Under the pieces are notes generated by a model that saw only the letters and a list, made by a program, of their open reading frames with translations, searched no databases and had not been told where the DNA came from. Made by a program: the position numbers and the translations under genes. This document shows positions 1,611 through 62,044 of a stretch of 64,000 nucleotides of DNA, piece after piece; position 1 is the first letter of the stretch; every line of letters begins with the position of its first letter. The stretch covers positions 7,812,001 through 7,876,000 of the forward strand of contig OZ176052.1 of the NCBI GenBank assembly GCA_964247055.1, in the 5' to 3' direction. Source of the DNA: Paragordius varius (lineage: Eukaryota; Animalia; Nematomorpha).

Positions 1611-4600
1611 ATGACATCTATTACAAATTTTATTGGTCTTACCAAATTTTTCCCTCAAACAATCCAGCAATTATTACAAAAGCCAAATATATCGTTGATT
1701 AAGCTATATATAGCAATTTTTACCACAATTGTATGTAGTATCTTAGTTAATACGCTCAGCAGGACATCGCTTGGATGTAATGCATTCAACCTGGACACCG
1801 ATGTCCCAATCATCAAAACAGGTGTTGTCAATAGCTATTTTGGGTTTTCGGTCGCTCAACATCAAATCAATTTTGGCCGCTTTAGGGAAAAAGTGTAAGT
1901 TAATTTACGTATTTTTACCACAAGTAGATTTTATTTAGTTTTTAGAATTAGGAATCGCATTTTTTATGTAAACAACTTTTTTTAAATTGAGTTTTTATAA
2001 TGTATGACTCATTTTATAGTTTTTAACTTTTTTATTTTTTTAATCCGCTATTTACTTCCGTAAACTTATTTTTAAATTAAAATGTTGATGGATGTTTAGT
2101 GTTAATGCCCCCACTTTTTTAAATAGATTTAAAAAACATTTTTCGAAAGCTTTTAGTAGGGTTTTTAAAATTATGTTATCCTTTATTTTCATTTCCTAGG
2201 GATACCTCATCCATATAAATTGTTATATGATATCTATAAATTTATATCAGGATTATTTCAATAATAATAATTTAATTTACTAAAAAAATCAATAATTATC
2301 ATAATGATGATGTCTCTACTCTGTAACACTTTTACTTTTTTGGTCTTGTATAATTATTTAATATTAATCATTTATATTTATAGTTATTTAATAAATTGGT
2401 AAATATTAATATTAATTCACATATATTTTATTCATGTTTTTAGCGATGATGTTAGATAATTGGATGTTTTATGACTTTTTGTTTCTAAAATAGTCAATGG
2501 TTCAACCAGATAAAATATATCTTTAAAATAATATTTATAACGGGTATTTTTATGTTTTTTGCAACTCTTATCCAAAAATATCTCATAGTATCAAAATTTT
2601 TAACCAACATTTAAGGTCCTAATAATTAAAGTTATGTTAATTGCAATCAATAGCTTTTTTAGATTCTTAACAATCCCAACTTTAAACTTAAATTCTTATT
2701 TCAAAAGTAAATGTAATTGCAAACGCTTTCATAACTCAATGTACCGAAAAAAATCGCACAACAGTTTAATATTTTTCTATAATTTTAATCTATTTTCTTA
2801 AAGTTTACTTGATAGGTTCCATAAACGCTGTCGAACATTAGTTTAAACATTGCTGTTTTATATTACAAAGATTAAACCCAATTTTAATTTCTGGCTTTAG
2901 GGCAAAAAATGACATTAATGCTGCCCTCCCTTTGTAATTTGTATAAAACAATTCCACATTCGTAAGGAGAAATTACGAATCTCAATTCCACCAATTTTTT
3001 GAAACATTTCACTTTTGATGAACAACAGATGCGTAATAAATTATCCCCACACAATTTTACATATATGAATATCATTATCATTCTAGGTAATAAATGGGGT
3101 TGTCTGTGGTTTTATTTTTTTATCTAGCTTTTTATAAAGCAACAATTCAGCCATTATTTCGTAGAGATCATCTCTGAATTATAAGAATATTTGTACATTA
3201 TAAATGTAAAACATCTTTGATAAGTAAATTTAATAATATATATCTCTAAACCTAAATTAACTCAGATGGTTGGTTTTGTTAATAAATACTTAACAACGCC
3301 TGTTTTTGGGAGAGCTTTTATTAGATGAATATGCTGTATTATAGTATAATTTTAATTCTGTATAGTCAATTAATATGAACTTTCGATTGTTATTTTTTAA
3401 CCATTGTCAATTATTTTTTATTTTTATCAAAAAATAGAGAAGTATGTTGATTAATGCGATTTTTTTGTCAAAAAATGCCACGGGTTTCTCCTTCCCTGTA
3501 AAAAAATATTTTTTTCGAAAGCGTATAGTGGGACCAATTAATTTTTCATTATGTCCTTAGGCTGGCATTTTATAAATATAAGCGCTAAATTAGCACCTGT
3601 GTTAAACCCCAAATACCCCTGTGAAAACCTAGGTTAAGCATTTATCTAAATAAATGTTCGCACCATTTATGCATTCAGTTATTTCCTTTAGAGTGAGCAG
3701 ATTACAATGGTTGAAAATTTCTATCAGCATTGGGTGTGTTACCATTCAAAAGAATGGAACAGATGAAGTCCCATTAGGGGTCGGAAATTACATCAAAATT
3801 ATAGTGTTAAAATTACGTTTGTAATATTGCACATGTAAATATATTATGATTAGATCAAGAAATTGGCATCATGATACTTTTGTCTGATATTATTAAAATG
3901 TTGTATGGGTATTTATCTTTGGGAAAAGCCAATCATCTTTTCCTTTTTTTATGTAATGATAGGAGAAATATATATAGCAGAAATTTGAGTTTTGGTATCA
4001 CAATTATAAATGGGAATGATAAATTAATCACATAACGTATCCAACTAATGAAAATTATTTTGTTTATATATCGATTATTACACGGCAGTACAAATTATAA
4101 TCGGAGTTAAACTAACAATTTTATCAGTCTTGGAGATAGCACAGGCAGGGGAATTATATATATACCATTTACAAATTCACCCTCAAACAATGCAAATATA
4201 CCCTTGAACAATTCAAATTCACCCTCAAACAATTCAAATTCACCCCAAAAAATAATTATGTGTTTTCGAACTAATGTAACTCATTATTAATATAAAATAT
4301 ATCTTTATGGCATAATTTATTATTTTTTCAATATTATTTTATTTTAAAACACAATTTTATTTTTTAAAAATATAGTAAAATATAGGTAATTTTTAATCTT
4401 AAAAAACATGTTATTTATTTGAGGGTGAATTTGAATTATTCGAGGGTGAATTTGAATTGTTCAAGGGTGAATATGAATTGTAAATGGTACGCTTTTTTTG
4501 GTTTTTTTACCAGCTTTATGCGCGTTTAGATATTTATTTTATTTACACTAATATGATATTCCTGAAACAATTATATATATATATATATACCCTAATATGT

Positions 4601-7600
4601 GTGAATTAGAATGTTGGTGGGTGCACCGTTAACCGTTGTTCCAGGCGTACGGACTACGAGCCCTGGTGCCCTTTACAAATGTCCCATGACAGGTCGGATG
4701 GATGATTGTGAACGGATTCGAGTCGATGACGATTTAGCTCGTATGTCTACTATAATTTCATTTATATACCATTTACAATTCAAATTCGCCTTTGAACAAT
4801 TGGAATTCACCCTAAAAATAAATTAGGACTAATATAACTCATCATTAGTATAAAATATATTTTTATGGCATAGTTTATTATTTTTTCAGTATTATATTAA
4901 TTAAAAACAATATTTCATTTTAAAATATAAAAAAATAGATAATTTTTAATTTTAAAAATCACATAATTTATTTTAGGGTGTTGAATTGTTCGACGGTGAA
5001 TTTGAACTGTAAATGTATACATATATATCCATTTTTTTTATATAGTATACATTTATGCTGGCTCATTAACATTATTGATGACCGATTGGCATCACAGTAA
5101 TGTATGGTTAAAAACAACAAAATTGATGAACTTAAACATTTTCCCCCTATTTTACAACAATAGTTTGTTTATTTAATTTATGGACATAATTTGTTTTATA
5201 ACACACGCTACTGTATTCATTTAGCCAACCATAATGTTAATGGGCCAGCATATATGCGTACACTGTAATTGATATATACAATTATATGTATAAAATATTT
5301 ATTTATTTTCACAAATAGCAAGGGTTTACAGTGTAGTAAATAATCTTTATAGAGGACCATATAATTGAATTTTGAGCCAGGCATTACGGTGAACGAGATG
5401 AATCAAATAAATATATTATCGCCTAAACGTTGATTTGGAAAATTTTTTTCTGGAAAATTTTAAAAATCTAAGACATCAAAAAAATACAAGGTATATATGA
5501 AATCCATTTAAATCGGCATATTCACATGGATTATTAACCTATGCGTCGTCTACGGCATATGGTCTAAAACTGTGTGTTCAATGCGGGCCGCATTCGAATA
5601 TGGGCATTCATTAATTTATTAGATTTCAAACATAAAACTTCAAAAAGAAAACAAAATCTAAAATAATTTTTCTTATTCTTGCTGTTTGGATAGATTTATT
5701 TAGAAAAAAGTGTCTAAGGAATAATAATTTTACCAAAATTTTCTAAACATGTTTTTGCAAATTATGGATTCCGAATTTATCGCGGGCCGCACAGAAAGTT
5801 TCGAAATTTAATATTTATCCATATCATAAATAAGAAATAATCACGAATATTAGACTTTTATACTTCACCAATATTATTTGAAATTTTTTTACAAACACCT
5901 CATTTAAACGTTATTGATTTTTGGAAATAAGCTAAAATTATTTGGTTGTCGAGCTAAAAAATTCTGCTAAAAAAGGGTCATCATTTATCATTTCATAATT
6001 GGCCTCTAGAGATTTTTTTTCTTAGTTCTTTCGTCTCCTACATTTTTGCATATAAAATTATATTGTAGAAGTTTAAAAATAGGAATATCTAGTTATATCA
6101 ATGGTTAAACTCAAAAACACTATATACTAAATGAATTATTATTTATTTAATATTTTAATTACCAAAACATTTTCGCCCAAAATAATTACTAACAGTAAAA
6201 AAATCTTCCTTTCTAAATATATGTTTATTATGTGATAAAAAATATATATAATATAATAATATAAAAAATTAAATTTTTAATCAATCTTTATTTCATATTG
6301 ATTGGTTAATTTCGATTTTATTTAGCCGACAACACATATTTACATTTGTGGTTTTTATAGATTGGTTTGACCATAATTGAATGCATTCATAAGCGGTAAA
6401 ACCGGTTATTTTAACCGGTCAAAATCCAACTCTAACTATCACGCTTTTAACATTATCAATTTAATTTTACCATTTAAATTTTTAAGCTCTCAGATATTTT
6501 ACTCTACAAATTCTACTTTTCTATGTGATTGTAGCTATCATTGCAAAACCGTTTTCAAATATTAAACAAAATATTTAGGACGATATAAAAACTTATAAAT
6601 TTGCAATCAATTCTTGCATATTTTAGCTGACAAAGAGGAAAAACGTGACAATCAATGGTTAGGAGTTACGGTTAAAAGTCACAAAGAAGGCGATGCTGTG
6701 GTGGTATGCTTTATACTTTTTTCAATCCAATTTAAACACTTTTTAGGCAACATTTTTTTAATTAAACATGATATAAAATAGCATATTTGGGTTAGAAACT
6801 ATTTAGGCTTCAAAAAAGAGTTTTTTACGTATATTAAGGATTCAATATTAAGTTTTTTAATGTTTTCTATTCTCTCAAATTTTCTCTGATTATTGAATAA
6901 AGTATATTGATTTATTTATAAAAATATAAATCCTCAAAAATATTATGTAGAACTATTGAATTTAAATATTTTGTTTTTGGAGTAATAAGTTAATTTATTT
7001 TTACTAGTTGATATTAAGGCGTAAATCAATATTTTTACACTCATGTTAGATTTATTATAATTTTTAATTAAAATAAAAAATATTTTTTTTATATGATTCT
7101 AATCTAATAACACAAAATCGCTAGTTAACTTTCTATTATTTTGATATTCCCACGGTCGTACGTGAGTTAATTTTGCCACGTGTTTGCAAAAAAATGTGTA
7201 ATTTTGTTGTGTAAATATGCAAAAGTACTCAACAATTGTTTTTTGATATAACGTGTTTTGGCTTCCAAAAAATTTGTCATATTTAACTTAGCAATATAGA
7301 AAAACAATAAAAGAATTGTTATTGGTTGGCAAAGACTTTTAGTTAGTACACAGAGTTTTGTTATTATGCAACAATATTTTTGTTATTTTGTTGCTTGCAA
7401 TGTTATTAGCTCATGACCTTTTCACATTTTTGTCCGCGATGACATGTTGGGGTAATTTTATAACTCGGAGCTTAGCTCCAAAACACGATTATTTAAATAG
7501 CTGATTTTAAAAATATTAAGTATCTGCAAGCATAATATAGTTAATTATTTAGATTTTCTAACCTTAATATACATTTATTTGCCTATTGTATTAGCGCTTC

Positions 7601-10600
7601 AAAAAAATTTAAAGAAAAAAATGGCGGGAAAAAGTTAGTCATAGATTTTTTACAATTTTATATTTTTTAAAAAACATTGTATTATGGGCCTTAATGACTA
7701 AAAAAGCATATTTTTAGATTCGGCCATATAATACTTTTTAATATATTCAAATTACAAATCGCTCTGGGATATAAATCTACCCTAAAAGATCATTAAGTGT
7801 TAATTAATGCAACAAAAGAACAAAATATATTGTTAATATACCAACATATCTTTTCTCTCTCAATACCATGTTGGCCAATAATATCGCTCTTTCTATTAAA
7901 ACTATTACTGTACGAAACAATTAGTTAGGAATCGTATTATCCAATTTTTTTACAATATTTATAAAATAACTTTAAAACGATCATGAATACTTAATTTTTA
8001 AAGCCGTGTATCAAAGCAATTTTTAAACTATCAATCAGGAATACCGTTTTTTGTGTCCTTCTTACAATTATCAATGAATAACTCAACTGCTACTTTAATT
8101 TTTAGACGTGTGGGCATCGTTATGCCCGGAATGGATCAGATTATCATTGGGGTTTTGGGATATGTTATGCCCTCTCTTCCAACCTTAAATACGAAGAAAT
8201 GTATTCTCCTTGCATTGGTCGTCCTGTGTTTAAGGCCCATCAACAATTTGGCTTCTGTCAAGCTGGCACCTCCGTTTATATTGCGGCAAATGATGACTTG
8301 ATAATAGGAGCTCCTGGGTCATATACATGGACAGGTTAGCTTGTTTTTTTCGTGTTACATAAATAATTTGGCCTTAGATTTGAAATGTGTTTTAGATTGT
8401 GTTTGGAAATAAAGATATTGGATATAATTTTAGCCCTTTTTATATATTTTTAAATTTTCCTGTATATAACAAATGAAGTTAAAAACCTTTTCAAAAACAA
8501 TGACCATCCTTTCTATTGTAATGAATTGAAAATATGTGTATATAATTATTTCATAGTTTATATCAACTATTTTCGATATTATAGGTGCTTTGTTCAAAAA
8601 CAATGTTGCTTCGGGAATTTATGGGGATAAACGATGGTTTTTCACACCCCTAGAACCGCCTGATCCCGTCCCAGTCAGCCATTACAGTTTTTTGGGTAAA
8701 AAGCAATGATTTATATAACTCCGTTCATATATAAACGGCTTAAATATAATTTAGTTTTATCACTTTACAGAATAATATTAAATTAATGCATCTTGCAATT
8801 ATCCGTAATTTGAATTGCTGAAAAACTCCTACTCGATATATTATTATTAGTGTTTAAATATTAATCGGCTATTTTTTAGATTTTTACTATTTTTTCATTT
8901 TGGCTACCATCATTACAAACCTTGAAACGTTTTATCCATAATGTAAATTAAGGCATTTCAGTGTATATTCAGACATATTTTTAGTCCCCAAAGTAATACC
9001 ATTTTCCTCAATCTATTACAGTCATGGATGTTTAGAAATGTCAAACATACGTTTTTAATTGATTTTACTTTGTTTGTAATTGTTATGATGTTTGATATGT
9101 CAACTTTCAACATGCGCATTTTTAAGCCTTAAAATAATTATAGCCTATTTATTGTAAACAATTCAAAACAAAGTAAATTCAATTAAAAACGTATGTTTGT
9201 CAATTCTAAACATACATGACTGACTGTAAGCGTATTTTAATTTGCCATTTTTAGTTCGGAACTTTTTAAAAAATGTTTTATACATGTTGTAGGCATGTCA
9301 GTATATTCAGGCATTTTTTCAGCCCCTATGGATGAAACGCGACCTTCTCCAAAATTTTCTGGTTCTTCCGTTTCGCCTCCCTACACTTTTGTAGCTGGGG
9401 CGCCAAGGGCCAATGGAACTGGACGTGTTATTTTATTCGAACGATATGATAAAAATGCTAATGCGATTGATGGCAACATCAATATCAATAATAATATTAA
9501 TGCAGGATATGCTATGAGGTATAACATATAAATTTTTGCGGATATAAAAATATAGTTTTTTTGGATATATCGTCCATTCAATGTATTTTGTTAATTGTGA
9601 TTCGTAATCAATCACTAATTTATTTTATCAAAATTTGAAAATAAAAGTTAAAATAATTCAACCAAAAATAAAATTTAGACAAAATTCAATACCATCTTCG
9701 CATACAACGCTCATCCCTACGTTGACATTAAGTGGGAAAGATACAATTGGTTCCGGTTTTGGTTATGAATTAACTGGCTTAGATTTCAATGGAGATGGGT
9801 AATTGATACATATATAAATTATTTTTATGAAACCCAATTACTGGTCTAAAATAATTTTTTGCGACTTTTTTGATTTCCCAATCAATTTTACAGTTACCTG
9901 GATTTAGCGATCGGCGCACCTTTTCATTATGATGTTGATCATGAATCAATTGGTGGAGCTGTTTACATTTTTATAAATGGACCTCAGGTAGTTTCAAGCG
10001 TATATATAATAAATTATATAGATGTTTGTTTTCCAAGACAAACTTTATTATAACCTTAATTAAAAAAACATTTTAATTTTTTTAGAAAAATCAAATATTT
10101 ATTGGAAACTTTTTTGTTTTTTAACCATATATTTCATAATATGTGACATAAGATGGAACTTTGAGGTTGAGGTTGTGCTGAAAATTCCAAAATTGCATTA
10201 TTAATTGGAAATTTCGGCCGGAAATGATATTTAATACTTATTTTATTTATTTTATATAAAAATTAACTGTATCGTGGTATTTAATTTGCATATTTTATCT
10301 CATCTATTTCGCACAAACTAATTTCCTGAATTTAAAATTTATAATTATTTTCAAAAGGGATTGAATGCAAAACGGCCCATTGTATTACATGGAACGAACG
10401 ATTCCATGTTTGGTTATTCTTTAACGTCTTTGGGGGATATTAATTTGGATGGCTATGATGGTATCATATATATTTTAACTTAATATATATTTCTGCTTTA
10501 ATTGTAAATTTTAAAATTGATTGAATTCCCGACCTGTTGTTTCTTATAATTTTGAAACAAGGATTTGAACCGTAACCGTTTTTGTGGCATTAAAACCGTA

Positions 10601-13600
10601 ATAGAAACTTTTTTAAACCAAAAAGCGGTTTCAAATCATGTTTTTATTTTTTTTTGTTTAATAATTATGTTAATATTTTTTGATTTTATATATTATGGTC
10701 CTTTTTTAATAAAATAGAATACAATAAATTTTTTGTTTAGTTTTAATTTATTGGAAAATTGAAATAATTCTATCTGTAAATTTTGAAAAATGTATAAAGA
10801 AATCAGAACCATTTAATCTATTATGAGTTGAGTATTTCGATTCCTCTTTATAACATTTCTTCGTTTAAATTAAATATAATGAATTAGCAATTACCTTAAT
10901 TCCTATTTTCGGGATATTCAAAATAATATTAATATGTTTTAGATCTGGCCGTGGGAGCCCCTAACTCAGATAATGGCCAAGGGGCCGTTTACATATTTAA
11001 CGGGGCAAACGAAAATGAATACAAGCATTATACGCTATCTGAATCAACTGCTGAAACCAAATTCCAACAAAATGCGGGCAATCGTTTCACAAGCGATGAC
11101 AATCAAAGAAACACTTATAATTCAAATGGAGATGAAATTATTTTTAACAATGAAGATGTTAGATCAGACAATTCTGATACAGAAGGGGATTCTGATTCAT
11201 TTGTTAGCACAAACGTTTTATCGTACCCTGCATCACAAATTATTACGCCTAATGTGCTTAAATATACGGATACACCACAAAACCAATTTGATTTAATGTA
11301 ACATATTTTTTTATGAAATTATACGGACAAAACGTTAAAATGTAAAGACAATTTTTGTTTTCAAAAGACAACCATACTTTTTTAAGCCTTAAATTACCCT
11401 ATAAAAATCATTTAACCTAAATTAAGATACGTTATGATTCTGTTATCTATTTAAATCTCTATTGCAGTAAAACTATGATTTATAATTAAATAAATCTAAA
11501 TTTAAAAAGTATGGTTGTCTTTTAGAAAAAAATATTTGTCCTTACATTTATATGTTTTGTCCGTATAATTTCAATTTTTACTGTATATGCATGCTAGAAA
11601 AACAGAATTTATGGTAAACAATGTTTTTTTATAATTTTATAGGTATAAGTTTGAAGAAATAATCGGATTTGGCCATTCGCTTTCTGGTGGGTTAGATATG
11701 GATGGAAACGGGTATCCAGATTTACTCATAGGATCATACCGATCAGATAAAATATTTTTACTGAGGTATGTTTATTTAATTATTTCCTATATTTAATGGA
11801 TTCTATATGGAAAATAGATCGGAATCATTCATTACGGTGCCTAAGAATTTTTTTGTAAAAATTGTTAGTTTCATTCGAATGGTTGTGCTAATTATTTTGG
11901 AACAATGTAGCGAATAAGGCTGATAAATACAAACATTCAATGTTAACTATGTGAATAAAGATGATTTAAAATAAATAGCATGTAAATAGGATTAATATAA
12001 TACCAAAATAAAATCATATCTTATTTTCTAAAACGAGTAAAAGGCTGATTCTTTGGTTTTACATAAAATATACCCGTAGTAGCTTATATATTTTTTAACT
12101 TTATGTGTGTGAAAAATTACCTGATTCCCCAATCATATATAAATAATATTTTTTAATAAAAAATAACTTATGCATTTTGTAGATCTCGTCCAATTATAAA
12201 TGTGTATTCTGAAGTTCGAGATTTACCACAAGCATTAGATCCATTAAATCCGTCAGAGTTTACTTGTCCCAATGATCAAAATTTTGGACAATCCCACAAC
12301 ACTCTCAAACCACGCATATGCTTCCCCATAAAAATTTGTTTTAGGTATTAATAATTTTAAAATCAGTATTTCAAAACTAAAAATGATTTCTAAATTTTTT
12401 TATATTAATAATATTGAACCAAATTTATTTCTTAAATAAATGTAAATGCCTTCGAATCAAATCATACTTGCATGATGAGTGTACACAGGAATTTTTTGGT
12501 TGCAGAGAACTAAAATTTTGAGATATAATAAAAATTATATGGGGGTGTCGTAAAAGTCGGAAGGTAACTCTTTTATATTTTCTTAACTCGTATGATGATA
12601 AATACATAATTTTAATTTTTATTCAATTCATAGATTTGCATCCGTGGGTAAAAGTTTGCAACAACACCCAGCTGGGCTCAAAATTAGATATCATCTTATA
12701 GCTGAACGTGTTATTTCTCATCAAACTGCTTTAGTTAATGAGCCTTCTCATTCTACCCTTCATTTGGGGAACCGCGTAGGACAGGGAATTACTAGTGGAT
12801 TTTCGCGCGTCAACTTTTTCCCGAATCCCTTAAACAATGTTTCCTATTTTCCCTCAATCGACAAAGATAATTACAATTATGACGATGATGAAAGCACGGA
12901 TCATAATGAATTAATTGGGCTGAAAGAAGGTAGGTTTGTTTGTTTGTTCAATGGGTTTTTATTTTAGTAACATATTTGTGTTCCTGTGTAGATATCATAA
13001 CATACTCTTATCTATAATAAAGCAATCAATAAATTTATTAACCACATCAACTAAATGAATATAAAATAGATACATTTAAATAATCAACCTTACTTTAAAC
13101 CTGTATGGGTGTATATAATATATTTCATCATTAAAGGAAAAATGAAAAATTTCCGTCGCTTATATTAGCCATACTTATACTTTTTGATAATTTTATATTT
13201 TGTTTTAGCTTAAAATTATTTCATTTTTAATTGTTTGCGGCGTGATTTAACATTACTCTTGTAGATGTTTAGGTTTCAAATAAACTATTTTTCTTTTTTA
13301 TTCGGATTTTATACATTTATCTGAATGGTAAATGTTGATTATTATAGCGTATTTTTTTACAAATATCTTTAGACTCTAACCATCGTATATCACGAGTAAT
13401 TCAATTAACGTCATCACAAGCTACGCAGCATTACATATGTGATACTAGCATTGCATATCTTAAAGTAATTATATATCTCACATTGAAAGGCTCGAATCCA
13501 TATAAAAAATAATTAATAACCATACTTAAATATTTCTATACAATATATTCCTTGTCGAGATAGTGTTTTTTAGCTAAATAATTTACTACAAAACGCTTGC

Positions 13601-16600
13601 GGATTTAACTTTGGCTGTTTTTTGAATTTAATAGTGTGAGATTAATATCTTTAAGTAACGCAATATTTTTTTCCTTACAAATCGAACCAAAATCACCCTA
13701 TTGTAAATAATATAATGTCGAACCTTAAATAATCTTTCATACCACCGTTAATTTTAACATAATAATTTTCTAGTTTAATTATTAAAATGTGATTTGATTT
13801 TATATGAACTAACTTTATTATTATTATGACTTTCAGCCCGAAACAAAAGATTTCTTGAGGCCCATAAATTTTCAACTTTTGGTGAATTTGACGGATAAAA
13901 TACCAAATCAATATGTGGATGATCCATTGGTAGACATAAATTCTTACCCTGTGTTAAATCAAGATTCCGCTATTAAAACTTTTCAAGTAAATGTCAAGTC
14001 AATTGTTGTTTTATCCACCAATTTTATAACTTTAAGTAAATAATACAACATTTTTTGCTTTTCGTCAGGTTCCATTTCTAAAAGATTGCGGGGAAGATGA
14101 TATGTGTGAAAGTGATTTGTCTCTTGAATCCAAAATTAAATTACCCAGGTAATAATTTTTCACATACTAAAAATAATAGATGTAAAAATAACAACTAATA
14201 GATATTGGAACATAAAATCAGTTACTTTTTTCAGGCCGCTGTACTTTTACATTGCAAAGTATGAAATAAAGATATAAATTGATAACACAATCAATTATAT
14301 ATTTTCTCTTTTAATCAATGAATTTATATAGGAAAAAATAACATTTTGAAAAATATACGAGTGTCTTACGAAAAAATTTTTGTCTTTATGTTTTTACATT
14401 ATGTCTGTATAATTTTAAAACTTCGAATTTTACTGTAATATATTTGTCACATCGATAAAGATCGGCAGAAATGGATGATCAAGAACGGATCCTTTTAACC
14501 CTGGGTCAGTATAAAGAAATTAGCTTTTCCGTTTCCATTGAAAATTATGGGGAAGCCGCTTACGAAACTGAATTATACATTCATTTCTCATCTTTCATTA
14601 ATTATGTGGGTTTTAAGGTACCAACATCTGCTACACCAAAAATAAAGGCAAACCTACCAGGAGTATATTGTTGATTTTAGCAAAATTATAATTGATTTTT
14701 TACACGATTAATGCATTTCATTCATGATATATAAACTCTTGAATTTTTTGTGAAATATCTAATAATAAATACATAAAAATTTGGATTTCCCTAAAATGAA
14801 TGATAAAAGAAAAATTTTTTATATTTTGACTACAAATAAGTAACTGTAACTCTCTAGATATTAATTGTACAATTTAATACGTTCATTTTAATTACATGAT
14901 TAATAATTGTACAATTATTATAATAGATGAGAATCGGGCCTAAAAATTACCTATGCACCTTACTTAATGCTACATTGATAAAATGTGATATTGGTAATCC
15001 ATTCAAACGCGATGAAAAAGTAAAAATGAAGTTTTTATAAATATAGTTTAAAAATATTGAAGATAATTAGTTAAATTATTTATGCATATAAAAATTTTTT
15101 AATTGTTCAGAGTAAAACAATCTCTAGTAAATAGTAATGAAGTTAAATTTTAATAAAATGTGAAAAATTATGCTTTTTGCAGGCTGAATTGGTTTTCACT
15201 TTCGATGTCAGCAAATTGAAATTGGAGGATAACCGTATAAATTTTAATGTCAATGTTACCACGTAAGCCCGATTTTTTAACCTTTCATTTGCATCAAGAA
15301 CTATAGATATATTCAATTCTATTTTAGTACCAGTGCCGATAAAGGGACTTATGTAAAAAACCGAACAATAACTGCACTAATCATAATCAAATCAGAAATG
15401 AGTTTGGAGGGGTAAAATACATATAATTAGGTTTTAATTGCACTCTTATTAAAAATTAAATTGATATTTATTTTTTTCTAATAGAATTTCAGTGCCAGAA
15501 CAAATCTTCTATGGTGGCTTGGTTCAAGGCGAAAGTGAAATGCGCCGCGAAACTGATATTGGAAATCCGATCGAACATCGATATGTGGTATAAAGCATTT
15601 TTTAATATCAAAATATTTTTATTTAAACGGACTATTAATAGAGTTTGCCGTGACTGTAAAATTTATACTTTAACGGGCTAAAAGCCAACAATTATATATG
15701 TTGTCTTTTAGAATACTATTTGAGTTTATATTTGTTTGCCTTAGATTTTAAATCATGGCCCAGGAACCATTGCATCATCTTCAGTTGAAATATTATGGCC
15801 TTATGAGGTCGAAAATAGACGGGACCAAGGAAAATGGCTTTTTTATTTAACCAGATACCCTTGGGTAAATATTTATATATCTTAGTTTTTCAAATATTTG
15901 ATAATTTTTATTTCAATATTAATTTGATATACTTTGATTAGATTGATGGGGAAGGTATGTGCGATGTGGATTTAAAACATGTCAACACCTTAAAATTAAA
16001 GGTATTTGCATATAAATATTGAAATATAAATAAAATCTGATGAAATTATAATAAATTATATTTTTAGCTTGAAAACAAACATAAAAAGATATCAGAGTTA
16101 CGTCCAAAGGTATGCTTTTCAAATAAATTGTTTAATTGATAAAATTATAAACCGGGAAATAAATTTATATTTTAACACTTATATCGTTTAGAAGAATAGA
16201 AAAAAACTCAAATCATTAACCAAATCAATCAAAAGATTTAAACGTTTCAGTAAAAGAGTCATGTCTCGTTACAAACGCGAATTAATAATTCTACCAGAAG
16301 CTCGTATAATTGGAGGCAAAATGAGACGAATTGTTACAATGGTTGGTTATTAACATTATTGTTTATTTTGGAGTTAAAGGCCAAAATATTTCACTTTAAT
16401 GTAAAGGACCTTTTATTAATTATAATTAATTTAATTTATTTTAAATTATAAAGGACTGTTCAATCGGTACTGCCAAATGTCACACGATAAAATGTCAATT
16501 GGGACAATTGTTACCCGGGCAAAGTGTGGTTATTCATATCAAAGGCCGATTGTGGAATTCAACTTTAGTTGAAGTATTATATTAATTTTGGCAAAATTAG

Positions 16601-17671
16601 CGTGAGAGTTTTGTATCTATATATATATATATATCACATTTTAATTATTTACGATTATTTTCATTATTAGAATTTTATAATTCAATTAAATTTTCTTTTC
16701 CATATATTTATCGCTCTGTAAAAATCTTTGGATTGTATCCATATCTCAAAATATTATATAATGGTAATCACATGCATTATAAACAATTTTTCTTCCGATC
16801 GGACTCCTTTAGGGACAGTTACTCATATGCCACAAAATTAAAAATTTTAATTATAAAAAAAAATATTTTTAATCGAAAATTACTTTTTTAGGATTATCCA
16901 ACAATCGACGCTGTGTCCATCGTTTCCCGCGCTCAATTATCGATTGATAAGAAATATAATGTTGATCAAAACATCAGCAATGATAATTCTTTTGTAAGTA
17001 AAGCAAATATTTATTTTTACTAACGTGACAACACACACGGTATTAAGCGATATAAAAATGCTTTTTAATTTTTATAGAAATATCCTTTTGTTTCTTTTTG
17101 TAAATCTAACATCTTTTTTTGATTTGATTATAAATAAATTTTATAATTTTTATTATTTAACCTACTTAATTAATGATAGATGATAGCAAAATCGTTTGTA
17201 AAATTACGCTAAAAATGTCGTAAAAAATAGGTGAATTCGTTAAAGCTAAAGTTAACTCCCATTAAAATCATATTTATTTTGATAAAAATATTTAGTTCTT
17301 GCCAAATTATCAAAAAATAAAAGATTCTATTGCTTGTGTTTAGGTTTATACAATCGCATACCCTGATCTCGACGTTATTATGGAGCATAAAATAACGGAA
17401 CCTTGGATAATCATTGTTGCCATATGCTCCGGAATTATTTTATTTTTCCTGCTTACCATACTTTTGTGGAAGGTTTATATTTACAATACATACCTCTAAT
17501 TTTTCGGAATAAAATTGATATGTATTCTTAAAAAAATATATTTAAATAAAATCACAAAAAATTACCTGTCTATTAACTGTTTAGATTGGATTTTTTAAAC
17601 GAAAAGTAATGAAACCGCCATACAGCGCTAGATTAGAAAAAGCAAAATATGAAGAAATGAATGAACTTTAG
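1611..17671 (+). CDS. Integrin alpha subunit, no I-domain, laminin-binding alphaPS1/ITGA3-6-7-like; 28-29 exons, about 1305-1316 aa
   Basis: Exons: 1611-1894, 4610-4740, 6627-6703, 8106-8334, 8585-8695, 9293-9518, 9679-9798, 9894-9987, 10358-10460, 10943-11297, 11643-11765, 12183-12344, 12634-12929, 13373-13464, 13837-13986, 14069-14148, 14461-14617, 14927-15019, 15183-15262, 15328-15411, 15485-15587, 15745-15864, 15942-16001, (16068-16108), 16200(or 16192)-16341, 16454-16573, 16892-16993, 17344-17472, 17585-17671. Motifs: mature start FNLD, FGFSV/LVGAP FG-GAP repeats, Ca loops DFNGDG, DINLDG, DMDGNG, CGEDDMCESDL, YGGLVQGESEM, furin site RYKR, TM helix and KIGFFKR. Confidence 0.95.
4165..4487. 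mobile_element. MITE family C (TA-flanked, subterminal 21-bp repeats)
   Basis: TA|CCATTTACA ... TGTAAATGG|TA; about three AATTCACCCTCAAACAATTCA units at each end, in inverted orientation. Confidence 0.75.
4769..5015. mobile_element. MITE family C copy, 28 nt downstream of integrin exon 2
   Basis: TA|CCATTTACAATTCAAATTCGCC ... GGTGAATTTGAACTGTAAATG|TA; interior matches 4165-4487. Confidence 0.72.
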
Positions 17672-19022: not shown

Positions 19023-19319
19023 TAGGGGTGTCCAACACAAATGGCTTCAAAGGCCGCGCTTTTACCTCAAAATGTGATGGGCCACATTATAAAAATATGT
19101 GGGCATTAACAAAAATTATAACGGATTTTAAACATAAGACTGTAAAAAAATTACGAACACAATAACATTTTCTGCTACTTCGATGCCAAAATTTATTTAA
19201 GGAATATCAATTTTACTTAGATTTTGTCAATTAGCATCTTTTTAGTTGTAAAATTTTGTATTTGGTGTTTTTAAAATTTCTCGCGGGCTGCCAAAATGTT
19301 TTGGAGCCCCTCTGTAATG
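19023..19319. mobile_element. MITE family A (hAT/Buster-type, about 290 bp)
   Basis: Starts TAGGGGTGTCCAACACAAATGGC; GTTTAGAT is duplicated at 19015-19022 and 19320-19327. Confidence 0.75.
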
Positions 19320-34815: not shown

Positions 34816-34846
<31 letters not shown>

Positions 34847-47430: not shown

Positions 47431-47435
47431 TGATA

Positions 47436-52711: not shown

Positions 52712-53264
52712 ATGTCAAAATTATATATCCTCCGTTTGCATATCATTCTATTATGGGTAAAATTATCACCCATATTCTCAAATTCAATCATCAATTCAAA
52801 GAACATCTTGCCTTATATCTACTCAACAGATAATAGTTCTCAATCTTTAATTCAATCTATAAACCAACCCAAAGTTGAAATTGTAAAACAACAACAGGGA
52901 AATTCCATCATAAATGATTTCGATAAGGATTCGTGCGATGAAGGTTTTTTTTACCAAATATTTAGTTTTTAACTTATGATGAAATTCCATTTTGAAATTT
53001 ATTATTATCAAACATATAAATTGCTAAGGAGCAAAGTTTCGCTTATAAAATATATTTTGTCCGTCGTAATGAATTCCGCAATATATGATATATTATAGTT
53101 TTACCCATCATTATTTTTTGAAATAATTTGTTTTAAAAGTACATACTTTTAACATAACGTTTGCGGATCAAAAACGGTATAGTATAATGGAAAATTTATA
53201 TTATAAAATTAAATATTACACATTATATAATGAACGAATTCAGGACCTGATAAATTATCACGAA

Positions 53265-53327
<63 letters not shown>

Positions 53328-56300
53328 GTTTCATAATAAAAAAAATATCCAAATTATTAATATATTATATCTAGCTTTTAAATTTTAAGGTGTCTTATTG
53401 GGTGATATTATTCTAACTAAGGAAGACATACAACATGTTCTCACTCAAGATACCAATTTGCCACACCACATTAAATGGCAATTAGAAACGAATTGCACGA
53501 TAAAACATGTGAAGGAATCAATTAACTCCGATGAAACAACTACTTTGTCAGCATCAGATAACATTTTAGCTAGGTTAAAAAGATCAACTTCTAAACATCA
53601 AAGAGTTCATCGGAAATCTAAAAGAGCCGTCACCGCGCTCAAAAATAGATTGTGGGATTATGGAGTCATACCATATGAAATTGATTCCATATTTGACGGT
53701 ATATTTTTATCATTGTAATTTTGTAATTGTAAATCATTTGATCGAAAATTATGTATGATGGCTTTAAAGGGGTTTCCTGTCCTTGCAATTTTTATTTTGA
53801 TTAATTTTTGGGAAATTGTTTTTTGGCAAAATAAAATGGTGATGAGGTCCTCGTCCACTGATTTCTTTTAATTTAATATTAGGGAAAAATTAACATATCT
53901 TATTTATTTATGCGTAAATTAAATTTAAAAAATAAATAAATATCAGTTTAAAACAGATGTGTCTAACACAAATGGCTTCGCGGGCCGTATTATTTTTAAA
54001 AAAACTGGCGGGCCACATTCACAAAATATATGGGCAAAAACTAATATTTTCTTAGATCTTAAACATTAGATTAACCTATATTTATTTTAACAATTTTTGT
54101 TAGTTCGAATGCCGAGATTCGCAAAGACTTTAAAAAAATGTTTTAAAAAAATCAATTTTACTAGGATCTCTTATCTGTATTATAACTTTTTCGCGGCAGA
54201 AGGCCCCATGACGCCCGCGAGCCGCGTGTTGCACCCCAGTTTTAAAGTAAACAAATCCCATAAATATATTGATAAAATCATTATGCGAGATAAAATATTT
54301 GAATATTTTTATTTACTGTCTTATCTTTGGTGCATAATCACCTTTTATATTCATCCTCTATAAAAACAAAAATTATTTGGAAATATATTTCCAATTGCGT
54401 TTATTTATGTGTATGATTGATTTAGGGGCCCATAGAACTTTGTTCATGCAAGCAATGAGACACTGGGAAAACTTTACCTGTATTACATTTGTCGAACGCA
54501 ATGCTTCACTTCATGACAATTGGGTCATTTTTACAGAAAGACCATGTGGGTAAACTTGATTTTGATTTGCTTAATTTTTATGCAATGGTTAAAATGTAAG
54601 TTAATTACTTTCTATAAAATTATTTTATCATAGATGCTGTTCATTTGTGGGAAAACGTGGTTCCGGTAGTCAAGCGCTATCGGTCGGTAAGAATTGCGAC
54701 AAATTTGGAATTGTAATTCATGAAATCGGTCATGTGGTTGGATTTTGGCATGAACACACGCGTCCTGATAGGGATAGAAACGTCATTATAAATTACGAAA
54801 ATATTTTATCAGGTAATTTTATTTCTCCCTAAAGTATAATTATCCATAATATTATCTTTAAATATATATATAACATAATGTTATCGATAATATTGCAATT
54901 ATTATGGCTAATATAATTTTTATTACAGGCCAGGAGTATAATTTCAAAGAAAAATTCAGCAGTGAAGTCAACAGTTTGGGTGAGCCCTATGATTTTGGTA
55001 GCATAATGCATTATGCGAGAAATACATTTGCAAGAAGTACTTACTTGGATACTATTCTGCCACGTTATGCCGATCGATATGGACATAGGCCGGAAATAGG
55101 TCAAAGAGCACATTTAAGCACAGGCGATATACGTCAAGCCAATATACTTTACAAATGCACACAAAAACATGGTATCATTTTTTTGATGCTCCCTAAAATT
55201 CATAGAAAATAAATTTTTTTGAGATTTAGGTTGTAGCAAAAAATACGAGGGATGATTAAATTATATATAAGTACTTTTAAATTTTATACTATAAAGAAAA
55301 TACTTAGATATGATTCCAAAACAAATTACTTTACTGCTTTTTAGATGTGTTGCTAGCTCATTAGCGGTCATTTAATCAAATTATCCATATTATATAACAT
55401 TATTTTATTGTACCATATTTTTCTAGGGTGCGGAGGGACTCTGTTTAATTCTTTTGGGTATATAACATCACCCGATAGTGTTGCAAATCCAAATTCAATC
55501 AATGAAGCAACTGAAAAAAGTATAACATGTAGGTGGCGTATATCTGGCGCTTATGGTCAATACATAGTTTTCAATGTAACCAAATTTCATTTACCCTCCC
55601 CAAGTGAATTAAACGATGCTAAAAATTGTGGTGAAAATTACTTAATGATACGAAACGGATATTATGAGCTTGCTGAATTAAATGGTACTTTGTCTTTCAT
55701 AAATTCTATTCCCAGTATGTGGAATATATTTTAATATTTAATTAGACAAACTTTAATAAAATAAGAATTTAAATTGATAATCGCAAATTTTACATAAAAA
55801 TAGAGTCTTTAATACCCTATGCGTTTGAAATACTAAAGGAAAAAGATTAACCCCATTTTAATAGATATATATCAATTTTATTCCCCTTTACATGGTCATA
55901 TATTTTTTGTTTAAAAATGTTCAAATATGTCACAAGTCTTAACATTGAAACAATAAATTTCGTATTTTATATCTTGTATAAAGATATAAATAATAATAAA
56001 GTTTTAATGACCTAAATTTTCCGGTGCTTAGTTTTTAGTATAAAAATATAAATATCTAACATTATTAGCATTATAACACAATTTGTGAAAAAAACGTCAA
56101 ATTTTATGAGGTCACACAGTGAACCTCAAGGTTTTATTTGTTGTCAAAGATATGTTTTATTACTACATCTATATGCCTAATTAATTTTCATATTTATATT
56201 TGACGACAAATAATATATTTGAAACTAATAATTTTAGCTATATACTGTGGACAGGTAACTGTACCAATCTCTATACAATCAAATGGGCCCCATCTATGGA

Positions 56301-59300
56301 TTGAGTATAAAGCAACAATAGATGTTGAACAGGGAGACAAACCAAAGGGTTTTATTGCCCAATATGAAAGTATAATAAAAAATGTTTGAATTTTTGGGAT
56401 AGTTTGGGTTTTCAATGTCTAAAATTCAGGGTTAAAGTTTACAATACTAAGCCCAAACCCTAAATTTTTGCCTTTAACGGATCAGTAAATTTGTCTATTT
56501 TATAGACTATATTTCTTTTTCAGCATATAATTTTATTTGGATGATTTAAATTATTAACAACAAAAATATATTTTTGAAATTTTCCTGTTATATTAGAGTT
56601 TAATCTTTAATGCTTGAGGGTCCAACATGCGGCCCGCAAAATTTTCAAAAATTTTAAGTCAATTAAAATTTTATAATATTTAATTTTTCGATAATTACTT
56701 GATATTTATTTTTTAAAGTGATAGTTATAGTTTGATTCAAACTGTATCGTTCGAAAATTTCTTAATATTAAAGAGTGTATATAGCATCCCAAAAATGGGT
56801 CCAAGAGCTTTTGTTTCCCATAATTTATAGCCTAGGGTAGGGGTGTCCAACACAAATGGCTATGCCGGCATTTTTGACTCAAAAAATCCGTCGGCCCGCT
56901 TTCGAAATATAAATGACCATTAATAAATATTTTATTAAATTTTAAATTACTAACACATCAAAACTACCATTTATTTTTCATTATGCTAGTTCATAGGCAA
57001 AATTTGGAAAGAGTATTCGGAAAAATTGTTTAAGCAATGTCAATTTTACTTCGATTTTGCATTTATCATTTTATAATTTTAAAATTTTTGATTTGGTATT
57101 TTTTGAACGATGTCAAGAGTTGCGCACCCCTGGTCTAGGGTATGGAACTCTACCATTATTTTGAAAAAAATTAATATTTAATAAGATTCAGGCTTTAGTT
57201 AGGGTCATATTTATTTTTATGTTGTATTGATAATAGTTAAATGCGGTGGCACTTTAATATCAGACAATGGTGTGTTGAGAAGTCCCAATTATCCGTTCGA
57301 TTATTTAGCCGATCAAGATTGTTCTTGGATACTACAAGTTTCGCCTAATTACCAAATAGCCATCTCATTCCAAACATTTGAAGTGATTTTTAAAATTTTT
57401 TAATAGCCTTTAGAATTTCTCAAAAATTTAATTAAAAAATATTAACTTTTCATGAGTTTAATTAATGTTTTTATATATATCAATTAACCTCATTTATTTA
57501 CAAAGTGTAAAATATTTTCAGTACATGTTTACTGATAAAATATTTATGGGTTTCCTATTCTTGTATAACCAAGTGTGCTTAGTTATTCTAATATTTATTT
57601 TTAAGAAATATAACTAAATTTTCTTAATCATAATGTTATATTTTTATTCCACAATTTATACAACAAATTAATTTTAAAAAAATTTTCAAAAGATAGAAAA
57701 TCACGATAACTGTGTATATGATTTTTTGGAAGTCCGAGATGGATCAAATAATAATGCACCATTGATTGGTAGATTTTGTGGATATAATTTACCCAACAAT
57801 TTAACCTCGACAGGGAATCAAATGTTTTTGCACTTTAAATCAGATACGTCGGTACAAAAAGGCGGCTTTTCTTTGAACTTTTTTAAAGGTAGGCATATTT
57901 TATTTTTTTTTAATTTAAATACAAATATTAAATTGATGGATTTTGAATGATTTTAGAATCAGATGAATGCTTAACCAAAGATCATGGGTGTCATCAAATT
58001 TGCATTAACACAATGGGTGGTTATCGATGTGAATGTAAGCTTGGATATGAGTTGGGAGACGATAAGAAATCTTGTGAAGGTCTTAAATTTGCTTTGCGAT
58101 TCTGATTTTCCTGATAAAATTTTTGTAAATTGAATTTAAAAAAAAATCTAAGAATAAATTTATTTTTTTAGGCGAATAAAAATATTAATTTATTATTGAG
58201 CAGTGTGTAAATCACGATATATATTTTAAATAGTCATGGGACAAGTCAAAAATTTAATTAAGCGTAAAATATTAATATTTTGATTAATTAGAGCCCCTTG
58301 TTTTTAACATATTATTGGGTTAAAATATTTATTTTTGAATGCAAAACTACATATCTTAGAGGCCTGTGGTGGACTTTTAGAAAACACAAATGGAACCATT
58401 ACAAGCCCATCCTTTCCCGAAATTTATCCTCCCAGAAAAATATGCCTTTGGCAAATAGTTGCTCCTATTGGCTATAAAATAACTCTAAATTTTACACATT
58501 TCGACCTCGAGGGAAACAATGTAAGCTCGCAAAATTTAATAACTTAACAATTTTCAAAATAAAAAAAAAATTTTTTCATATTAGGAAGATTGTGAATATG
58601 ATAAGTTAGAGATTAGGAGTGGGAATATGGATGAACCGGATTACTCGTATTTACACGGTAATTTGTGTGGACCTCTTCTGCCCTTGCCTATTACATCGGA
58701 AAACAATGTGCTTTATTTGAGGTTTTCATCCGATAATTCTGTACAGAATACCGGGTTTTCAGCCACATACAACATTGGTATGTGGACTCTTTTTATATTT
58801 TAAGTTTTTTTGGCAGCATTTTAATAATATATATCTAGTACGTTAAAATAGAAAACATAAAGATAAAAAGTCAAGACTAAAAGACAAATATTATTTTAGA
58901 CAATCATGCTTATAATATACTGCATTTATTTAAATACTTATAAAAATGATTACTATTAGGATATATGTAACTATTAAAAAAATGTTTATCTTTATAAAAA
59001 TAATTGGTCTTTTAATTTTTAGGTTTTGTCTTTATAATTTGAATTTTAAATGTAATTATAATATATTTAAATTTCTTTATTTAGACAAGGATGAGTGTGC
59101 CATAGACAACGGTGGATGTCAACACATTTGTCAAAACTTACCTGGTAGCTATCAATGCCTTTGTCATGATAATTATGTCCTCCATGAAAATAAACATGAT
59201 TGCAAAGAAGGTAAATAAACACTTAAAAAATATGATTTAAATATTATATAAAGTTGATTTTTAAACTTGTGATTATATATGTCGTGAAAAAATATTTAAG

Positions 59301-62044
59301 CAATCAATTATTAAATTCATTTTGCACTTGTTTCTCTGTAGTTTTTTAAGGATAAAGGGTCGACATTAAAATTTTTATAAATCGAAGTCAATTTATTAAT
59401 TGGGCGAAGGTTAAAAATAATGTTTGGTTTTTTGATCATTTGTTCATTAAAGATTTGTGTCCACAACAATTTTGACTGAAATATAAATTTTAGTTTATGT
59501 AAAATATATTTTGGATTTAAACCATATTTCTTTCGTTTAACCTTCTTGTAGTTATTTCACCAATTTAAATTATAGGTGGCGGGTGTTATTATCAAATAAC
59601 ATCAGCTTTTGGCAAAATTATCAGTCCAAATTGGCCTTCCAAATACCCAAAGCGACAAGTTTGTTATTGGAATATAACAACCTTGGCTGGACAAAAGATA
59701 AAATTGGTATCAATTTTAATTTGTCTCAAATAAAAATATTTGTTAATAAATTCATTTTTCGGTGCATTTAAAGGATTTCAATAAGTTTGAAATTGAACAT
59801 CACCAAGAATGCGCATATGACCACTTGAGGGTATATGATGGGCCAGATACAACGTATCCAACTCTTGGGAAGTTTTGTGGTAGCAAGTCACCCTCATTAA
59901 TATCTTCCGGAAACAATGTTGTACTTTTGTTTGAAAGTGACTCTACAATACAAAAAACGGGATTTATAGCCACATATTCTACAGGTCCGAATCAAAAAAC
60001 TTTTTTATTTTAGTTATTAATTTTACTTTAATTTCTCTAATTAATAGTAAATAACAATGTTTTCATAGCAAATCTGGTGAAATATTTTTTAATTAACTAA
60101 GACTATTCACTTCCTTTTTTAAAGATTCCTCAATCAAATACTCATTTTATATTTGCATATAGTTAAAAATTTCGAGCGATTATTACTTAATATTTCTATA
60201 ATTCCTAACAAATTTCCTTATTGTATGTAGTTTGTGGTGGTCATTTAATAAGCAAAGAGGAAAATCAATCAATATATTCGCATGCCAAATTCGGAGATAG
60301 CAATTATGACATTGGGCAAGAATGTGATTGGCACATCATTGCACCTAAAGGATATAAGTAAAATTATTGGATATTTGCTATCCTTTTGCCCTACACTTAG
60401 AAAAACTAATGTTTTTGTTTTTGAAAAATTGATTAATTTAAAAACTACATAAACGTTCCAGACTATTTTAGTTATATTAGTAATAACGATCATGGTTTTA
60501 AAATAAACTGTGATATAAATATTGTTTTAAGTTAAATGATACAATAATTTATAAATGTTGTGCCAGTTAGTAATTTAACGACATTAGATTAGCCAAATCT
60601 GTATTAATTTTCTAAAAAAAGAGCAAATGGTGGTATTAAAGTCATTTTACCGCAATATATTTTTGAAGCGAAAGCTGTTAAGTTCACAAGCTCCGACGTA
60701 ATTGTTATTTTATAATATAATTATCCATAAAATGTTAATGGATTAATATTATCATGAATATTAGAATCGAATTAACATTCACAAGTTTTGAATTGGAAAG
60801 TAATCCGAACTGTACCTTTGATTATGTTCAGATCATGGATGGCCCAACCATGCCCTATAAATTTTGTGGAAAAAAAGTAAATAAATAATATTTATCTTTG
60901 TTTTTTTGCATATAAAAGTATGGATGTCAAAAAACAATTATTGTATTTAAATAAACTGTATTTAACACTTGGATACAACACATTCATTTTAATCCTTCGA
61001 TTCAAATTGGGGTAGTTGGATGCCCTAAGCGTGTTTAAAATTAAATACTATAATAAATATGTAATTAATTGAAACCATGGCAAAAGTGTGCACTTATATA
61101 ACATTAATCAACCCAATATAAAAAAAATTCAATCAAAAATACTTGATATTACTTATTTTAAGGTAAAACCCAAAGGTAAAAAATTAGTCAAACTGACATG
61201 TGTGCATTAGCAAAATATATAAATAATAATAAATAAACCACTTTTTTCTGTTTTTATCAATTTTAGATTTGATTTGAATAAAAAATTAGCTTTACTTTTA
61301 GCTTTTAAATTATATAAAAAAGATATTTTAAAAAAATGTTGTGAAACAAAAATGGCGGCCAAATAGTTTGATATGGAACTTTTTTCAAAACTAAATTTTA
61401 TTAAGATATCTCGGCGTTTTTATATAATTTTTAGGATAATAGAAGGATAAATTTAAGTTGAGACCGTATCTTTCAGTAGTTTTTTAAAAATATCAAAGTT
61501 TAGACACTAAATCAGGGCTGTCCAAAGCAAATGGCTTCGTGAGCCGCATTTTTTACTCAAATATCTGGCGAGCCGTATTAGAAATATATTGGTTATCATG
61601 GATAATTTATTAAATTTAAACATATGACTGCAAAATGCAAAGACAATAATTTTTTTATTTCATTAAAATGATTTGATAAATATTAATTGACCACCAAATT
61701 TTGAGAGAATATTTTCGCAAATAATTTCAATTTTGCGGGCCGCATATGGGTCTGCGTGTTGGACACTTCTAATATAAATTATGACTATTATGTCTATATT
61801 TTACGATTTTAAGTAATACATCAAGCTTATATTAAAACTTGCTTAATTTATTCAAAATATATGCATATTACGGCATAATTAGGCAAACATGACCTTTGTT
61901 TCAGCCCGAAACAGATTACGAATTCATTTTGTGACGGATGATGCAATTAACTCAAAAGGTTTTCATGCAATATACCGCACCTACATCTCACATCAGAACA
62001 AAACCCGATCTCATATAAAATCGACAGAATCAATATTGTCTTGA
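52712..62044 (+). CDS. tld: Tolloid/BMP1-family astacin metalloprotease (pro, astacin, CUB-CUB-EGF-CUB-EGF-CUB-CUB), 18 exons, about 1054 aa
   Basis: Exons: 52712-52943, 53390-53698, 54426-54549, 54634-54812, 54929-55171, 55427-55684, 56238-56369, 57237-57382, 57693-57888, 57957-58079, 58360-58520, 58585-58777, 59085-59210, 59576-59706, 59774-59984, 60231-60357, 60765-60876, 61883-62044 (3165 nt). Furin site RKSKR|AVT, zinc motif [13 protein letters not shown], Met-turn SIMHY, five CUB and two EGF modules. Confidence 0.95.
53267..53320. repeat. (AT)n microsatellite, about 27 units, in tolloid intron 1
   Basis: Direct read. Confidence 0.95.
53954..54239. mobile_element. MITE family A copy in tolloid intron 2
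   Basis: CAGATGTGTCTAACACAAATGGCTTCGCGGGCCG ... GTGTTGCACCCCAG; flanks GTTTAAAA / TTTTAAAG. Confidence 0.7.
56838..57132. mobile_element. MITE family A copy in tolloid intron 7
   Basis: TAGGGGTGTCCAACACAAATGGC ... GTTGCGCACCCCTG; flanks GCCTAGGG / GTCTAGGG (7/8). Confidence 0.78.
60966..61512. mobile_element. MITE family B copy, reversed and truncated
   Basis: TTAA|CACTTGGATACAACACATTCATTTTAATCCTTCGATTCAAATTGGGG; colinear with the reverse complement of 28766-29347. Confidence 0.72.
61513..61771. mobile_element. MITE family A copy abutting a truncated family B MITE in tolloid intron 17
   Basis: CAGGGCTGTCCAAAGCAAATGGCTTCGTGAGCCG ... GTGTTGGACACTTCTA. Confidence 0.7.

Follow-up and report, generated by a model that had tools for sequence, protein, structure and literature searches.

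The 64,000-nt stretch of Paragordius varius DNA analyzed here (C3:7812001-7876000, contig OZ176052.1 of assembly GCA_964247055.1; referred to below as the window) carries protein-coding genes whose introns differ sharply in size. Introns of fewer than 30 nt lie in the gene for aspartylglucosaminidase (AGA; 19779..22366, plus strand) and in a boule gene (39090..43033, minus strand), and introns of 64 nt and above occur in integrin alpha, IQSEC and tolloid genes. An original prediction, made from the letters of the window, had proposed two intron size classes with nothing between them, sorted by gene and handled by two distinct recognition regimes. The results presented below are consistent with two length classes separated by a deep dip, as part of a genome-wide architecture that may be served by a single splicing machinery.

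The window was read at the level of individual letters together with one 200-kb block of another chromosome (C1:5000001-5200000; the C1 block), which had been picked by round coordinates before any look at its content. Together these make up 264 kb of an assembly of 110.6 Mb in 44 contigs, with a guanine-plus-cytosine (GC) content of about 27%. Window genes were rebuilt with a self-trained exon chainer that used a flat prior on intron length. Strict chaining driven by position weight matrices (PWMs) only proposed candidates; it misses or distorts tiny introns, and its in-frame trimming of exon codons turned a true 27-nt intron into a call of 48 nt and a true 30-nt intron into one of 42 nt. Each call below 64 nt was inspected and, wherever a protein family or structure covered it, checked against that. 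Exons were searched separately, and joined translations were used only for reading frames. Counts of open reading frame (ORF) joins at GT-AG and at decoy dinucleotides (TG-GA and others) gave no GT-AG excess at any length, in a test limited by decoys that bracket real junctions and by a weak coding model.

The introns of the AGA gene measure about 126, 28, 28, 68, 653, 380 and 320 nt. The two adjacent tiny introns that had been claimed for it were both recovered at 28 nt with GT-AG termini (intron a, 20172..20199; intron b, 20313..20340; plus strand), and both are seamless on the Asparaginase_2 model. The three exons around them correspond to positions 34-82, 85-119 and 122-161 of this model, and the intervening positions are supplied exactly by a split codon and the first residue at intron a (83-84) and by residue 37 and a split codon at intron b (120-121). 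Within intron a, an in-range AG at 24 nt (TTTAG) is passed over, and the frame requires the AG at 28 nt. The skipped AG hints at either a rule of acceptor choice or an unproductive alternative splice.

The boule gene consists of RRM exons followed by a low-complexity tail. Three of the four tiny introns attributed to it were retained (42857..42883, 27 nt; 42742..42764, 23 nt; 42659..42686, 28 nt; minus strand), all of them GT-AG and within the RRM. The first, which is in frame and contains stops, was given as 48 nt by PWM-driven chaining; its removal joins IFVGGIPTQ to TLENEL, matching RRM_1 positions 1-9 and 10 onward. The 23-nt junction is seamless because exon 2 (RRM_1 12-40) stops at position 40 and exon 3 (RRM_1 41-55) begins at position 41. 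The putative third intron, recovered by relaxed chaining, joins EEDVKKVNSM to SDSLSFKDRKLNVGPAIKKQ at the end of the RRM; reading frame and motif are its support, and an HMM (hidden Markov model) search with the short last exon gave no significant match. The fourth, a 24-nt candidate seen in the sequence after an assumed ATG (43007..43030, minus strand), would need that ATG directly before the donor GT, for which no support was found; the chainer keeps this acceptor but takes a donor lying 245 nt upstream.

A plausible intron of intermediate size was also found in the tail of boule, so that the claim of nothing between the two size classes does not hold as worded. This putative 43-nt intron (39840..39882, minus strand) has the ends GTAAGC...TTTATTTAG, with TTTAG at the acceptor, and was called in both chaining runs. 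It remains a candidate because homology support is absent: a Pfam search with the tail exons and a protein word search with the large boule exon returned nothing. The mini-exons on its two sides (66 and 63 nt; window 39777-39948, minus strand) are both multiples of three, and each could be skipped without a break of the reading frame.

Inspection of the C1 block revealed 15 further tiny introns, 21-32 nt in length, distributed over nine genes: PP1 (24 nt), LSM1 (27 and 25 nt), HPD (30 nt), ALR (21 nt), ATG16 (25, 22 and 32 nt), ARL (22 and 26 nt), PP2C (30 and 26 nt), ARIH1 (22 and 30 nt) and SLBP (23 nt). Junctions seamless on protein family models were obtained for ARL on Arf (to 83/84-111/112 onward), ALR on Evr1_Alr (48/49/50), LSM1 on LSM (31/32/33), PP1 on the end of STPPase_N and Metallophos 1-7/8, and HPD on 4HPPD (228/229-252/253 onward, across introns of 59 and 30 nt). 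Those of ARIH1 and PP2C were seamless on the structures PDB 5udh (residues 38/39-60/61/62) and PDB 2i0o (residues 35/36/37), respectively. A protein word search with the ALR exon found nothing. Together with the five retained in the window, 20 tiny introns were curated, and all 20 are GT-AG. For 13 of them (two each in AGA, boule, ARL and ARIH1 and one each in ALR, HPD, LSM1, PP1 and PP2C), removal leaves neither gap nor overlap on the coordinates of Pfam, NCBIfam or PDB entries.

Under an artefactual origin, the short gaps would be indels of the assembly, insertions in coding sequence or frames of decayed pseudogenes, and the tracing method would have produced the size classes. The chainer does produce false introns of 38, 43, 50 and 53 nt across frameshifts in decayed transposon ORFs. 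The 27-nt intron of LSM1 (L007:5668-5694, in the C1 block) keeps the frame, contains no stop codon and would translate as 9 inserted residues, so that ORF-based tracing cannot detect it. When these 27 nt are read through, however, the LSM match splits into two stretches. The 20 introns share not only their termini but an A+T content of 82%, the 13 seamless cases, found in conserved single genes (PP1, LSM1, ARIH1 and HPD among them), were established with independent protein models, and the same sizes were met on at least eight chromosomes. An artefact is considered highly improbable.

The absence of tiny introns from the integrin, tolloid and IQSEC genes, as originally predicted, was confirmed by exon chaining, which gave no intron below 64 nt in any of the three; in integrin alpha no hidden in-frame candidate for a tiny intron was found. 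The gene assignments also agreed with domain matches, namely FG-GAP for integrin, Sec7 and IQ_SEC7_PH for IQSEC, and Astacin and CUB for tolloid. The integrin alpha gene (1611..19085, plus strand) was chained with about 27 introns, the shortest of 65 nt, and the IQSEC gene (22628..35536, minus strand) with about 11, the shortest of 87 nt. The tolloid gene (52766..61882, plus strand), which also encodes EGF domains, has introns of 64, 67, 68 and 84 nt and longer. At its 64-, 67- and 84-nt introns the CUB and Astacin matches run on seamlessly, and the continuity on HMMs extends across introns of 116 and 310 nt. The sizes predicted to come next after the tiny class in the window were recovered by independent ab initio chaining, at 64, 65, 66, 67, 68, 68, 73, 77, 82, 82, 84, 87 and 95 nt.

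Over the full 264 kb, 247 introns were chained confidently. Ten calls fell at 21-32 nt and five in the mid-range, at 40, 42, 43, 43 and 48 nt; above these came 59, 60, 64 and 65 nt, then a dense series up to 100 nt, with the bulk at 150-1000 nt. The mid-range calls of 42 and 48 nt proved to be distorted forms of true 30- and 27-nt introns, and one of 43 nt bridges a transposase-like ORF, leaving as candidates the 43-nt call in boule and a 40-nt call upstream of a sulfatase in the C1 block. Further chainer calls were discarded on inspection: those of 22, 38, 50 and 53 nt in a gypsy-like element and one of 25 nt in a reverse-transcriptase ORF are frameshift bridges, a 29-nt call in ARIH1 is at odds with the human sequence, and a 33-nt call is located in a weak chain. 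After curation, the 20 tiny introns made up 8% of about 254. The tiny class spans about 19-32 nt with a median of 26 nt, and ordinary introns begin at 57-60 nt. With most of the 247 introns at 150-1000 nt, this is not an ultra-short genome state in the sense of a median below about 30 nt.

Lengths elsewhere in the genome were estimated from exon-by-exon Pfam matches against the whole assembly, by subtracting three times the gap in the model from the gap in the genome; such estimates preserve the true length modulo 3, and indels are their only source of error. Among estimates up to 100 nt, 46 chaperonin junctions included one of 26 nt, none at 33-56 nt, and others of 57, 67, 71 and 73 nt, and 43 myosin junctions gave 32 nt, 52 nt and 71-89 nt. 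The 36 Ras junctions contained tiny introns of 19, 22, 22, 23, 23, 25, 25, 26, 28, 29 and 31 nt, followed by 46 and 53 nt and then by 58 and 67-86 nt. About 13 UQ_con junctions gave 25, 25 and 26 nt and two near 21 nt, none in the intermediate range, and 63 and 88 nt above it. No estimate below 68 nt was obtained in about 15 Neur_chan_LBD junctions, and RRM_1 gave 26 and 31 nt. A Pkinase estimate of 43 nt, from two clean exon matches (C1:9148632-9149007), has the same size as the boule candidate. Several matches with internal stops carried 24-30 extra bases, which suggests in-frame tiny introns.

About 175 genome-wide junctions, taken from coordinates alone, included 18 at 19-32 nt, four at 43-53 nt and 20 at 57-100 nt. 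Per nt of length, the pooled counts came to about 2.7 for 19-32 nt, 0.25 for 33-56 nt and 1.4 for 57-100 nt. Two modes are therefore present below about 100 nt, one at 19-32 nt and one from 57 nt up, and the range of 33-56 nt is depleted 6-10-fold relative to either neighboring range. The depletion that had been proposed is thus strong, but the range is a deep dip and not a forbidden window, since it holds six candidates.

Two genes of the Ras family have three estimated introns each, every one of them tiny (29, 28 and 23 nt at C2:7964739-7965373; 22, 22 and 19 nt at C5:5361143-5361730), and the whole gene therefore fits within about 600 bases.

The distribution of tiny introns among genes was assessed by shuffling the 20 tiny labels over 254 introns in 30 gene models. 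Adjacent pairs of tiny introns were observed eight times against 1.3 expected (P about 1e-5), and when only tool-verified introns were counted, four pairs were observed against 0.55 expected (P about 0.001). Ten large genes, a set that includes integrin, tolloid, IQSEC, RIM-binding-protein-like, BRPF-like, TBC, carnitine/choline acyltransferase and thrombospondin-repeat genes, contain 137 introns, none of them tiny against 10.8 expected; with one event counted per gene, this depletion has a P of about 2e-4. Intron positions 1-3 hold 19 of the 20 tiny introns, in 10 of 11 genes, some of these positions being taken from partial gene models. The exception is HPD, in which a verified tiny intron occupies position 7 of about 8 and adjoins a 59-nt intron. 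The share of tiny introns also differed by family, reaching 11/36 (31%) in Ras and at least five of about 13 (about 40%) in UQ_con (E2), as compared with about 2% in chaperonin (1/46) and myosin (1/43) and none of about 15 in Neur_chan_LBD. The shuffle test and, in part, the family contrast bear out, also beyond the window, a link of the tiny class to particular genes and local runs.

Splice signals were compared among tiny introns (n = 20), introns of 57-110 nt (n = 42) and longer introns (n = 190). The donor and acceptor consensus, G/GTAW...TAG/ with slashes at the exon boundaries, is common to all three classes, with about 65% G at -1, GT, 64-80% A at +3 and A or T at +4 on the donor side, and 71-80% T at -3 before the acceptor AG. 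Only G at donor +5 declines, from 23% through 12% to 5% from long to tiny introns. The tiny introns have a GC content of 18% and are T-rich at -3 to -9; among the 20, neither a common branch motif nor a motif specific to the class could be seen. Their lengths show no preference for any residue modulo 3 (7/20 are multiples of 3), and the 3n class is not depleted. U12-type introns have a conserved ATCCTT-like 5' splice site and a TCCTTAAC-like branch site. Tiny donors read GTAW and have no C/T-rich box at +4 to +8, and a U12-type identity was rejected.

These data bear directly on the proposal of two distinct splicing pathways, in which tiny introns would take a dedicated route, for instance one aided by the nearby cap or independent of a polypyrimidine tract, ordinary introns would take the standard one, and genes would be sorted by the route they need. 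The strong 5' bias of the tiny introns (19/20 at positions 1-3), the falling frequency of G at +5, the narrow length range and the AG passed over at 24 nt in AGA intron a all favor such a route. Set against it, donor and acceptor composition is otherwise equal in all classes, so that there is no sequence mark of a separate recognition system, and the verified tiny intron of HPD lies at position 7 of about 8, beside an intron of 59 nt. The two recognition regimes of the original prediction found no backing in the splice-site logos, which are alike, or in any standout branch motif, and a dedicated pathway is regarded as unlikely. The same tentative standing is given to a bolder version, in which a mechanistically separate, length-measuring and 5'-end-dependent assembly of the spliceosome would serve the introns of 19-32 nt of a defined set of compact genes, in an animal whose introns are otherwise ordinary and transposon-filled, and the size class would act as a regulatory or quality-control label at the level of the gene.

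A purely historical account was also weighed. Genes that were once compact and had tiny introns would have had most of their introns inflated by transposons and duplications, in steps of tens to thousands of bases, leaving tiny introns as relics wherever insertion was escaped and the dip as a reflection of insertion sizes. Transposon debris is present in long introns, MITE (miniature inverted-repeat transposable element)-like copies lie around integrin exon 2, transposase-like and gypsy-like ORFs occur within and between genes, and the tiny introns come in runs. Against this stands the dense shoulder of transposon-free introns of 59-100 nt, with its sharp lower edge, and insertions alone leave both the 5' bias and the large genes devoid of relics unexplained. 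This history is doubtful as the main cause of the pattern and is rated as distinctly improbable.

The preferred reading, to which a probability of roughly 0.6 is assigned, is that one splicing machinery with two workable length ranges underlies a genome-wide two-class architecture, of which the window is a local sample. Both classes would be ordinary GT-AG spliceosomal introns of the U2 type that share a weak, AT-rich consensus, and length, not sequence, would set the class of an intron. Introns of 57 nt and above would be long enough for their two splice sites to pair across the intron in the standard manner, and the sharp edge at 57-60 nt resembles the minimum that such pairing usually requires in animals. 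Tiny introns would be removed in a compact configuration that is workable only over a narrow range of lengths, and intermediate lengths would splice poorly and be purged. As to origin, the tiny introns are probably ancestral introns that have shrunk and been kept at the 5' ends of compact genes. They would survive or appear chiefly at intron positions one to three, usually in runs, with compact, broadly used genes keeping them and large tissue-type genes lacking them.

Several points weigh against the model of one machinery with two length ranges. The depleted range of 33-56 nt holds six candidates, namely the boule intron of 43 nt, the 40-nt call of the C1 block and the estimates of 43, 46, 52 and 53 nt. 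The labels "large tissue-type" and "compact, broadly used" were assigned after the data had been seen. Chaperonin genes are housekeeping genes and yet have few tiny introns, and housekeeping status is therefore not the whole rule. The likeness of the logos is drawn from 20 tiny introns and from ordinary sites chosen by PWM, so that a subtle difference could be missed. We infer excision of the tiny introns from protein colinearity alone. Finally, the calls of long introns and some intron positions depend on the self-trained exon chainer, and the letter-level reading covers only 264 kb.

Several other features of the window were recorded. Two MITE-like elements (window 4172-4489 and 4767-5015) closely flank integrin exon 2 (4608-4740), and their inverted ends consist of 21-nt subrepeats (ACAATTCAAATTCACCCTCAA). 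A gypsy-like retroelement (window 47682-51510, plus strand) has gag-pol-type ORFs split across several frames, and GC is raised around it, to 0.375 for window 48001-52000. Related transposase-like ORFs lie at window 25254-26557 (plus strand) and 46740-47267 (minus strand), one of them within an IQSEC intron; they gave no Pfam match, and a similar ORF chain is present in the C1 block. Adjoining tolloid is an intronless gene of 285 residues (window 62140-62994, minus strand) with an LRAT domain (E 3e-19). An Rfam search of the window found nothing.

To our knowledge, introns shorter than 30 nt were long believed to be absent from animals. They have been described in two animal groups only, both parasitic, the myxobolids and Dicyema, where motifs are reduced and neighboring introns are also short (Hadjez et al. 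2026, PMC13644364). The tiny introns of P. varius resemble those of Dicyema japonicum and the myxobolid Myxozoa in being GT-AG introns below 30 nt with motifs of about GTA...AG, in adjoining other short introns, and perhaps in having no clear branch motif or polypyrimidine tract. In those animals, however, the median intron is 22-27 bp and the genome is compact, whereas here tiny introns make up about 8% in a transposon-rich genome of 110 Mb, introns typically measure 150-1000 nt and the two classes are set apart by a depleted range.

The overall layout has a closer counterpart in neodermatan flatworms, and the pattern is not the undescribed system that had been suggested. In Gyrodactylus salaris, intron modes lie near 32 and 58 bp, the short mode is found at intron positions 1-2, and the gene sets recur in Echinococcus (Hahn et al. 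2014, PMC4040987); bimodality in tapeworms was first noted by Tsai et al. 2013, as cited in PMC4040987. Bimodal, 5'-biased and gene-tied short introns are thus already published for Gyrodactylus and tapeworms (PMC4040987). Like these animals, P. varius is a parasite and has two modes under 100 nt together with many long introns, a short mode at the first intron positions and a non-random set of genes for each mode. It differs from Gyrodactylus in its lower mode, at about 26 nt as compared with about 32, in an upper class that starts at 57-60 nt with a shoulder at 65-95 nt, in the wider dip and in belonging to another phylum. Among ciliates, introns include some below 30 bp, and those of Stentor are all 15 or 16 bp, as cited in PMC13644364. 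A narrow length range, an AT-rich interior and an apparently ordinary spliceosome are common to ciliates and P. varius; unlike in these unicellular organisms, there is no 3n depletion here (7/20 multiples of 3).

No paper reporting the pattern in horsehair worms was found in the literature, and a Gordionus genome preprint makes no mention of introns. The novelty lies in the animal lineage and in a flatworm-type layout that is combined with an ultra-short lower mode in a genome that is not compact. Tiny, ordinary and kilobase introns share one genome, and even single genes, with the classes split by a depleted range, and the genome is in this respect a natural experiment on the minimum length for pairing splice sites. 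It may also open a way to learning how introns are processed when they are too short to accommodate both ends of the early complex that normally forms. Standard gene finders and aligners, with their smallest permitted intron set at 30-60 nt, will disrupt many small conserved genes of this genome or put them in the wrong frame, and such errors could add to the apparent gene losses and low BUSCO scores of genomes of this kind.

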